A stretch of DNA of 64,000 nt. Origin: Rebecca billardiae RCC1528. Its lineage: Eukaryota; Protista; Haptophyta. The notes beneath the pieces are model-generated. The model did no database searches. It was not told the origin of the DNA and saw only the letters and a program-made list of their open reading frames with translations. The DNA lies in assembly GCA_965240325.2 (NCBI GenBank), contig OZ251234.1:310001-374000 (forward strand), written 5' to 3'. Positions 51,266 through 52,665 of the stretch are shown here, piece by piece. How positions within the stretch are numbered: position 1 is the stretch's first letter; each line of letters opens with the position of its first letter. A program made the translations under genes and the position numbers.

Positions 51266-52665
51266 ATGCGTCCAGCGGGAAGCGGCGACGGGCGCGCACT
51301 CGCGCGGCTGCACGTCATCTCCGGCCACGTGGCGCCCGGCGGCGAGCGCGAGATTAGCATGGAGGAGGTGGCGCAGCACAACTCCGCCAAGTCGATGTGG
51401 ATCGTGGTCGACGGCGTCGTGTACGACATGACGCCGTTCCTCTCGGAGCATCCGGGCGGCAAGCGGATCCCGCTCAAGTACGCGGGCACGGATGCGTCGG
51501 AGGTGTGGCACTCAATGCATCGGCCCGAGATCATGGCCGAGTACGGCCGCGAGCTGCGCATCGGCCTGCTCGCCGGGAGCCGCAGACCGGCGGGCGTCGG
51601 CTCCGCCGGCGGCGGCGCGGGCTCGAGCGCGCCTGGCGGGACGCGCGACGCGGCGCGGTACGCGGCTGCGCTGCGGCAGTGCGCCGCCGAGCTGCGCGCC
51701 TTCGTCGACGACGAGAACTGCCACCCGATCCTCGTGCGGCTCGCGTGGCACGATTCGGGCACGTTTGATCGCGCGCTCGCGCACCGGTGGCCGGCGTGCG
51801 GTGGCGCCAACGGCTCGATCCGCTTCGAGCGCGAGCTGGCGCACGGCGCGAACGCGGGGCTGAAGAAGGCGGTGCTGTACCTCCAGCCCTTCAAGGAGAA
51901 GTTCGCCGAGCTCTCGTGGGCCGACCTCATCCAGCTCGGCGGCGCGATCTCGCTCGAGCTCGCGGGCGCGCTGCCGTCGCCGATGCGCTACGGGCGCGTC
52001 GACGTTGCGTCCGAGGAGGAGTGCCCGCCTGAGGGGCGGCTGCCGAGCGCGTACCCGCCGTTCCCGGGCGACGTGGACGCGCCGACGCACCTGCGCCAGG
52101 TCTTCGGCCGCATGGGCTTCTCCGACGCCGAGATCGTCGCGCTCTCGGGCGCGCACACGCTCGGCCGCGCCTTCAAGGAGCGCTCGGGCGTGGTGGAGGA
52201 GGGCTACGGCCGAGGCAAGGGCACGCGGCACACGCAGCCGCCGACGGGGCGCGCGCGCGCGGATGGCTCGACGGCGCTGGGCATGCCCGGCGGCAAGTCG
52301 TGGACCGAGCGCTGGCTCGCCTTCGACAACTCGTACTACGCGTACGCCGGGCACGCGGCAGACCCGGCGCTGCTGTGGATGCCGACCGACGCCGCGCTGC
52401 ACGAGGATGCACACTTCCGCGGCGCGTACGAGCGGTGCGCGCTCGGGCGCGGGCGCGCCGCGCGGCGCGAGCGCCACGCGCCGGCGCTCGGGCCATCGCC
52501 CCCGCGCGCGCTCACGCGCGCGCGACCTGTGCGCCACGCGCCGGCGGCGCCGCGTGCAGGTACGCGGCCAACCCGCGCGCGTTCAGCGTCGACTTTGCGT
52601 CGGCGCACGCCAAGCTGTCCGAGCTCGGCTCGCGCTTCGACCCGCCGCAGGGCATTGTGCTGTGA
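51266..52665 (+). CDS. APX: Cytochrome b5 - ascorbate peroxidase (class I heme peroxidase) fusion; intron 52435-52559
   Basis: b5: EVAQHN..WIVVDGVVYDMTPFLSEHPGG..AGTDAS..MH. APX: RLAWHDSGTF, GGANGSIRF, HGANAGL, ALSGAHTLGR, SWTERWLAFDNSY, MPTD, spliced [20 protein letters not shown]. The two domains are in one exon with no stop between them. Confidence 0.92.

Follow-up and report, generated by a model that had tools for sequence, protein, structure and literature searches.

In the window, i.e., the whole 64,000-nucleotide stretch of contig OZ251234.1 from the haptophyte Rebecca billardiae RCC1528 that was analysed here (positions 310,001 to 374,000), we identified a two-exon gene on the plus strand (51266-52665), whose spliced product of 424 amino acids (aa) joins a cytochrome b5 domain to an ascorbate peroxidase (APX). 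Judged from its sequence, this product is a genuine b5-APX fusion with an APX of the chloroplast type, and its architecture, consisting of a nonapeptide similar to the peroxisomal targeting signal type 2 (PTS2), the b5 domain, a linker, and the APX domain, can be regarded as practically certain. The best explanation, to which we assign a probability of about 55%, would be a soluble two-heme enzyme that is imported by means of its PTS2 and in which b5 relays electrons directly to APX. Peroxisomal location, heme loading, the transfer of electrons from b5 to APX and its direction, and an upstream donor are the parts of this explanation that we infer.

Gene structure

The ATG at position 51266 is the first in-frame ATG 5' of the b5 domain, and from there the gene encodes, in this order, MRPAGSGDGRALA-RLHVISGHV, the cytochrome b5 domain, a Gly/Ala/Ser/Pro-rich stretch, and a class I peroxidase. 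The following features were assigned, all on the plus strand:

51266..52434 (+), exon 1, from the ATG to aa 389 plus 2 nt of the Arg390 codon; PTS2-like signal, b5, linker, and most of APX
51305..51331 (+), PTS2-like nonapeptide RLHVISGHV, aa 14-22, assigned by pattern and orthologs
51356..51571 (+), cytochrome b5 domain, aa 31-102 (Pfam PF00173, E 3.7e-20)
51449-51451 and 51518-51520 (+), b5 heme ligands H62 (in HPGG) and H85 (in SMH), from the b5 alignment (A1)
51572..51646 (+), Gly/Ala/Ser/Pro-rich linker, aa 103-127 (25 residues), in frame in all orthologs
51647..52434 (+), APX domain, exon 1 part, aa 128-389, assigned by Pfam and structure match
51737-51751 (+), distal APX residues R158/W161/H162
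52154-52156, 52301-52303, and 52388-52390 (+), proximal APX residues H297, W346, and D375
52181-52183 (+), ascorbate-site R306 in KERSG, equivalent to Arg172 in pea/soybean numbering
52435..52559 (+), intron of 125 nt, GT...AG, phase 2 (GTGCGC...GTGCAG)
52560..52665 (+), exon 2, last 35 aa and TGA stop

When 51266-52665 is translated without splicing, the APX frame is lost after ...HFRGAYER and the conserved C-terminus of APX sits in another frame, so that 52435-52559 must be spliced out. The straight translation, which runs on into the intron, was rejected and replaced by the spliced model. An earlier note on this DNA had given the start and the end of the gene correctly; between them, the gene is divided into two exons. 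The product of exon 2 resembles the C-termini of the fused orthologs P0003, P0005, P0007, and P0008 and those of unfused relatives, e.g., P0019 (...GSKFDPPEGIVL). An intron in the same codon and the same phase was found in genomic DNA of Diacronema lutheri (L006, 4209-4369, 161 nt, GT-AG), and genomic contig L007 of a related species is intronless, its open reading frame (ORF) continuing straight to the same conserved C-terminus. Automatic gene calls that ignored the intron (P0001 from this organism, P0004, and P0006) have junk C-termini from exactly this point. Support for the gene model is thus comparative, coming from orthologs and related contigs.

Among pavlovophytes, the presence of the intron varies (125 nt in the window, 161 nt in D. 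lutheri, none in the species of L007); those of the window and of D. lutheri both start with GTGCGCGC and are extremely GC-rich. Met32 was rejected as the true start, the residue not being conserved (T, L, or P in the orthologs). Two separate genes were rejected as well, as both domains are held together in L002, a transcript contig, and in the ortholog without intron on L007. Further upstream, two out-of-frame ATGs are located at 51157 and 51177 (+) in a divergent intergenic region of 147 bp; they open ORFs of 66 and 84 codons that overlap the start of the b5-APX gene and would be upstream ORFs if transcribed in the 5' untranslated region. The DNA of the window has a GC content of about 70%, and long empty ORFs are frequent on both strands; a chance ORF is ruled out by the E-values of the domains, the conservation among orthologs, and the statistics of the targeting signal.

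Domains and catalytic residues

The b5 domain scored 72.2 bits against PF00173 (cut-off 23.7) and the peroxidase domain 129.7 bits against PF00141 (aa 145-386, E 2e-37, cut-off 27), and by these scores both would be ordinary members of their families. The best match among solved structures was the stromal APX of tobacco (1iyn, E 1.2e-67), in an alignment that spans the chloroplast-type loop, followed at lower levels by cytosolic APXs (about 1e-45) and cytochrome c peroxidases (CcP, about 1e-25). In an alignment of 121 relatives, R158/W161/H162 and H297/W346/D375 were invariant or nearly so, and R306 was invariant in all 121, the fused proteins included. At the position of Lys30 in the ascorbate site of plants, the fused proteins all have Glu, and across the clade the residue varies. 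Both b5 ligands, H62 and H85, were invariant in the b5 alignment. Thus, the earlier note had read the domains correctly, having described a b5 domain with both His ligands and a Gly-rich linker, a complete class I peroxidase with distal R/W/H and proximal H/W/D, and a likeness to chloroplast-type APX.

The linker varies in length and sequence among the orthologs and is always in frame. An AlphaFold2 model of ortholog P0005 displayed two well-folded domains (predicted local distance difference test, pLDDT, of 88) with a disordered linker between them, the pLDDT falling below 50 at residues 102-113, which are equivalent to the linker.

Fused orthologs

A word search of 5.8 billion proteins for relatives revealed the PTS2-like-b5-APX architecture in six of them (P0003-P0008). 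P0003 is KAG8468917.1 of D. lutheri (Pavlovophyceae), which is 68% identical overall and 78% identical in the APX domain, and whose name in the public database is an automatic "L-ascorbate peroxidase". P0007 originates from two mRNA-like JGI contigs of 1.5 kb, each with a single ORF, a leader of 45 nt, and a trailer of 168 nt. The first AUG is located 5' of the nonapeptide and both domains share one frame, as seen in the ortholog transcript contig L002 (1.5 kb, MMETSP-type). Transcripts separating the two domains had been named in the earlier note as an outcome that would speak against the fusion; this contig of a related species carries b5 and APX in one ORF.

Probable peroxisomal targeting signal

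The nonapeptide RLHVISGHV agrees with the strict PTS2 pattern, R-[LVIQ]-x-x-[LVIH]-[LSGA]-x-[HQ]-[LA], at 8 of 9 positions, the last residue being V. In the fused orthologs, the corresponding nonapeptides (RMRVLSAHL, RLRVLSAHV, RLRVISAHL, RLRVLSAHL, RMRVLAAHL, and RLRLVANHV) were found at residues 6-7, or at 49 in one over-extended gene call. They keep the pattern R-[LM]-x-x-[LIV]-[SA]-x-H-[LV] amid varying flanks, and two of the six (P0005 and P0006), as well as the Pyramimonas fusion described below, agree with the strict pattern throughout. PTS2 peptides bind PEX7 as a helix, and the nonapeptide region is helical in the AlphaFold2 model of P0005.

The nearest unfused APXs have 300-340 aa and are 53-62% identical, and nearly all of them carry either an N-terminal nonapeptide or a C-terminal -SKL, -AKL, or -SKM. 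With a relaxed pattern, 44 of 119 APX relatives showed a PTS2-like match among their first 60 residues (shuffle mean 0.7), and 41 of the 119 had a C-terminal [SAC][KRH][LM], i.e., a type 1 signal (PTS1; shuffle mean 0.3), both counts being made on related sequences and not on independent events. In all remaining sequence of the 119 proteins, the relaxed PTS2 pattern occurred just four times. On the APX tree, the PTS2 and PTS1 labels switch several times, and the motifs differ in sequence.

Similar signals have been reported for other APXs. In an in silico study, Škodová-Sveráková et al. (PMC7237987) described that diplonemid APXs nest with APXs of algae, chytrids, and choanoflagellates, all of them PTS2-bearing; two of these diplonemids correspond to our matches P0016 and P0021. 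For a PTS1-bearing APX from Guillardia theta, a peroxisomal location was shown in a heterologous approach (PMC9244630). Neither Emiliania huxleyi nor Chrysochromulina tobin yielded a Pex7 in the study of Mix et al. (PMC6203080), who proposed an absence of the PTS2 route from haptophytes. The haptophytes lacking Pex7 in that study are prymnesiophytes, and pavlovophytes lie outside its sampling.

We read the nonapeptide as a PTS2 because it is kept in six fused orthologs and in dozens of unfused relatives and is swapped for a PTS1 in other branches. Comparison therefore supports the view that it behaves as a PTS2, and the PTS2-like signal proposed in the earlier note is supported by its presence in all six fused orthologs, by PTS2 and PTS1 frequencies far above those of shuffled sequences among the 119 relatives, and by agreement with the in silico study. 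Peroxisomal targeting of the window protein appears quite probable.

A second fusion and free b5 proteins with a peroxisomal signal

In the green alga Pyramimonas parkeae (MMETSP0058), the two domains are fused in the reverse order, PTS2(RVQALAMQL)-APX-b5 (P0011/P0126), on the transcript contigs L004/L005 with an in-frame stop upstream, and P0010 is a second protein of the APX-b5 type. In the APX tree, the seven b5-APX proteins formed one clade (support by the Shimodaira-Hasegawa-like approximate likelihood ratio test, SH-aLRT, of 99) and the two APX-b5 proteins another (97), the latter pair being placed across the starred split of the tree among unfused PTS2 and PTS1 APXs. In the b5 tree, which comprises only 85 columns and is weakly resolved, the clade of the window b5 (96) was sister (SH-aLRT 94) to a group of free b5 proteins, and the Pyramimonas b5 was found elsewhere, near other small b5s and flavocytochrome-b2-type N-termini. 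Both trees were quick ones. The b5 domains of the window type and of Pyramimonas are only 35% identical. A single origin of the fusion was rejected by the APX and b5 domain trees; according to them, b5 and APX were fused twice independently, in opposite domain order and with b5s of different subgroups.

The best free-standing match of the window b5, P0153, has 118 aa, is 56% identical, and ends in -SKL. Within the sister group of free b5 proteins (84-140 aa), P0202 and P0205/P0206 end in -SKL, and so does P0246 (84 aa) from Haptolina ericina, a prymnesiophyte haptophyte; other members are cut off by unrecognised introns. Altogether, a PTS1 ending was found in 45 of the 121 top b5 matches of a profile search (shuffle mean 0.3). 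Sources of such PTS1-b5 proteins were chytrids, Ustilaginomycotina (smuts), rusts (Pucciniales), Planoprotostelium, and many marine protists. A family of small soluble b5 proteins of about 77-140 aa with -SKL or -AKL ends comprises P0153, P0180-P0182, P0186, P0197, P0201, P0209, P0246, and others.

Because two independent fusions joined the same partners (Rosetta-stone evidence), we assume a functional link between b5 and APX, and the wiring of one to the other is supported indirectly. The earlier note had spoken of a possible self-wired peroxidase that may remove H2O2 without ascorbate. The first half of this claim gains indirect support from the two fusions of opposite order and from the free b5 relatives ending in -SKL. 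Its second half, independence from ascorbate, is not supported, as R306 of the ascorbate site is invariant.

Among the b5 matches, we also detected b5 domains of soluble fumarate reductases and of flavocytochrome-b2-type dehydrogenases. P0219, P0221, P0233, and P0234 are fragments of soluble fumarate reductase (PF00890) with a C-terminal b5 domain, whose motif EF[ND]MLHPPNVLKKY resembles the b5 of the Pyramimonas APX-b5 and that of b5 proteins with an -SKL end. These fragments may belong to the same peroxisomal redox network.

Gene neighbourhood

Three neighbouring genes or ORFs of the window were annotated:

46371-49031 (-), ORF of 887 codons immediately downstream of the SufS-type gene; its C-terminal half weakly matches class-V aminotransferases (E 3e-21)
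49751..51118 (-), SufS-type cysteine desulfurase (Pfam Aminotran_5, E 4.8e-142), outside the system
55321-56532 (+), ORF of 404 codons with a homeodomain (E 1e-16)

The SufS-type gene is oriented divergently from the b5-APX gene, their start codons being 147 bp apart, and the same divergent pairing was found in L001 and L007. No functional link to b5-APX was seen for the SufS-type desulfurase, the class-V aminotransferase-like ORF, or the homeodomain ORF. The N-terminus of the SufS-type protein (MLMLLLAASVARGAAAARG|FAP) resembles a signal peptide followed by the Phe motif of complex-plastid presequences. Apart from that, positions 1-4000 and 14001-18000 differ from the remaining window in a GC content of 75-86% and a positive GC skew of 0.28-0.43.

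Proposed function and alternative explanations

We propose that an APX with a PTS and a soluble b5 with a PTS1 would have occurred together in the peroxisome matrix of an ancestral haptophyte and that, in the pavlovophyte lineage, such a free PTS1-tagged b5 was integrated into an ancestral PTS2-APX, behind its PTS2 and ahead of its catalytic domain. After this insertion, a C-terminal PTS1 on b5 would have been no longer possible or needed, and the PTS2 at the N-terminus would import the soluble two-heme enzyme into the matrix. There, the b5 heme may take electrons from a putative peroxisomal flavoprotein reductase, for which PTS-tagged flavoproteins (fumarate reductase, flavocytochrome-b2-type) are candidates hinted at by the relatives of the b5 domain. 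Reduced b5 would then supply the oxidised heme of the peroxidase (Compound I/II) with one electron at a time, similar to the reduction of CcP by cytochrome c, with the disordered linker of 25 residues allowing b5 to dock and release. W346 is the proximal Trp, the residue that bears the radical in CcP. Such a relay would sustain peroxide removal and protect the enzyme under scarce ascorbate, and, the ascorbate site being retained, ascorbate probably would still be usable.

Several points weigh against this proposal. With the ascorbate-binding Arg invariant, catalysis can be explained without b5; peroxisomal b5 may serve further partners, the fungi with PTS1-b5 being known here from b5 alone; and the upstream reductase of matrix b5 is a putative component. 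As to targeting, V at position 9 of the nonapeptide departs from [LA(F)] of the published PTS2 consensus, prymnesiophyte haptophytes were reported to be without Pex7 (PMC6203080), and the motif counts come from sequences that share ancestry. Finally, start codon and splice in this genome rest on the comparison with relatives.

The main rival to a direct relay is that b5 serves as an ascorbate-recycling module, reducing the monodehydroascorbate radical on site, so that ascorbate would act as a catalytic mediator between the two hemes; b5 would then replace or supplement monodehydroascorbate reductase, and APX would be an ordinary enzyme working on ascorbate. NADH-b5 reductase together with b5 reduces the ascorbyl radical, and ascorbate binding is probably intact, as the fused proteins show no change at the Arg172 equivalent or at any catalytic residue; the Glu in place of Lys30 in all of them, at a position variable across the clade, points the other way. 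The Rosetta-stone evidence fits recycling as well as direct transfer, and nothing in the sequence separates the two. We hold recycling to be unlikely, with a chance of somewhat better than one in five. We consider it less likely again that b5 is not the donor of APX and was fused for co-import behind the PTS2, either as a heme-binding or regulatory module or in the service of another peroxisomal enzyme, in a kind of piggy-back targeting after b5 had lost its own PTS1. The occurrence of PTS1-b5 in fungi (Ustilaginomycotina, Pucciniales), where the comparison covered b5 alone, would be in line with this, as would the related b5 domains fused to soluble fumarate reductase and flavocytochrome b2-type enzymes, by which several partners appear possible. 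Both b5 His ligands are invariant, however, and convenience of targeting is a poor explanation for APXs of one clade having been fused with b5 twice independently, at opposite ends and with different b5 subgroups.

The explanation to which we give the least credit places the protein outside the peroxisome, with the N-terminal helix acting as a presequence, mitochondrial or otherwise, or having a structural role, or with translation starting at Met32, directly 5' of the b5 domain, to yield a cytosolic b5-APX. The N-terminal region is indeed Arg-rich and helical, and the off-consensus V and the absence of Pex7 from two haptophytes (PMC6203080) would fit as well. Against this stand the variable residue at Met32 in the orthologs, the nonapeptide pattern that persists amid varying flanks and is exchanged for -SKL in related APXs, and an acidic residue before the motif in most orthologs, which is atypical of mitochondrial presequences; in addition, the reported lack of Pex7 concerns prymnesiophytes and not pavlovophytes. 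The PTS2-imported relay from b5 to APX remains our preferred explanation.

Novelty and implications

In a literature search of limited scope, we found no description of a natural fusion of b5 with APX or another class I peroxidase and no paper on a family of soluble peroxisomal PTS1-b5 proteins; a prior characterisation of the architecture had been named in the earlier note as an outcome that would speak against its reading. By this search, the b5-peroxidase fusion and the soluble PTS1-b5 family would be new, and the protist PTS-APX clade was already known.

Peroxisomes produce much H2O2, and for protists without peroxisomal catalase its disposal and the source of electrons for it are poorly known. 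As a tentative generalisation, for which we see a chance of about one in three, many protists, and perhaps chytrid fungi as well, may have in their peroxisomes a matrix module in which a soluble PTS-tagged b5 feeds a PTS-tagged APX, so that H2O2 would be removed at the expense of a flavoprotein donor and not of ascorbate alone, the pavlovophyte and Pyramimonas fusions being hard-wired versions of it. If so, the donor would be an NAD(P)H- or 2-hydroxyacid-linked flavoprotein, and Pavlovophyceae would have kept a working PTS2/PEX7 import that is reported lost in prymnesiophytes.

The b5-APX protein offers a ready system to test if electrons from a b5-type carrier can sustain a class I peroxidase, in a b-heme counterpart to cytochrome c and CcP. 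It may also serve as a route to the peroxisomal reductase feeding b5, as a model for tethered inter-heme electron transfer, and as a marker protein for asking whether PTS2 import survives in pavlovophytes. APX is the parent of the APEX labelling enzymes, for which a self-reducing variant may be of practical interest.

Comparison with known systems

With the stromal APX of tobacco (1iyn), the window protein shares the distal R/W/H, the proximal H/W/D, the ascorbate-binding Arg, and the chloroplast-type loop before GGxSWT. Unlike the tobacco enzyme, it lacks a plastid transit peptide and bears a PTS2-like signal together with an N-terminal b5; the loop is longer than in 1iyn, and Glu stands at the position of Lys30.

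A second group of known systems uses a small electron carrier. The pair of cytochrome c and CcP likewise consists of a class I peroxidase and a small one-electron heme protein, and W346 corresponds to the proximal Trp191 of CcP. In the window protein, however, the putative donor has a b5 fold, the compartment would be the peroxisome instead of the mitochondrial intermembrane space, and the transfer is predicted. PDB entry 9q39 ('Peroxidase, Cytochrome c isoform 1') is an engineered covalent fusion, whereas that of the window is natural. Enzymes with a fused b5, such as flavocytochrome b2, nitrate reductase, sulfite oxidase, b5-desaturases, and fumarate reductase-b5, carry a b5 of the same Pfam family on a flexible hinge. 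In the fumarate-reductase-fused b5 domains, the second His is located nine residues after a conserved Asp as in the window b5, a spacing also displayed by yeast flavocytochrome b2. What sets the window protein apart from these enzymes is that the partner of its b5 is itself a heme peroxidase.

A likeness in clade and signal is found in the protist APXs with PTS2 or PTS1 from diplonemids, algae, chytrids, and choanoflagellates (PMC7237987), which belong to the same APX clade and bear the same kind of nonapeptide. They are single-domain proteins of 300-340 aa, whereas the window protein has a b5 between signal and enzyme. The PTS1-APX of Guillardia theta (PMC9244630), a protein outside the tree made here, is a further peroxisomal APX without b5. 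Multi-domain APXs of protists are represented by the Euglena-type tandem APX, an intramolecular dimer, and two tandem APX-APX proteins ending in -SKL, P0002 (589 aa) and P0009 (500 aa), which form its counterpart with a peroxisomal tag, belong to the same large clade as the window APX. In these tandem enzymes the catalytic domain was duplicated, whereas in the window protein an electron carrier was added.

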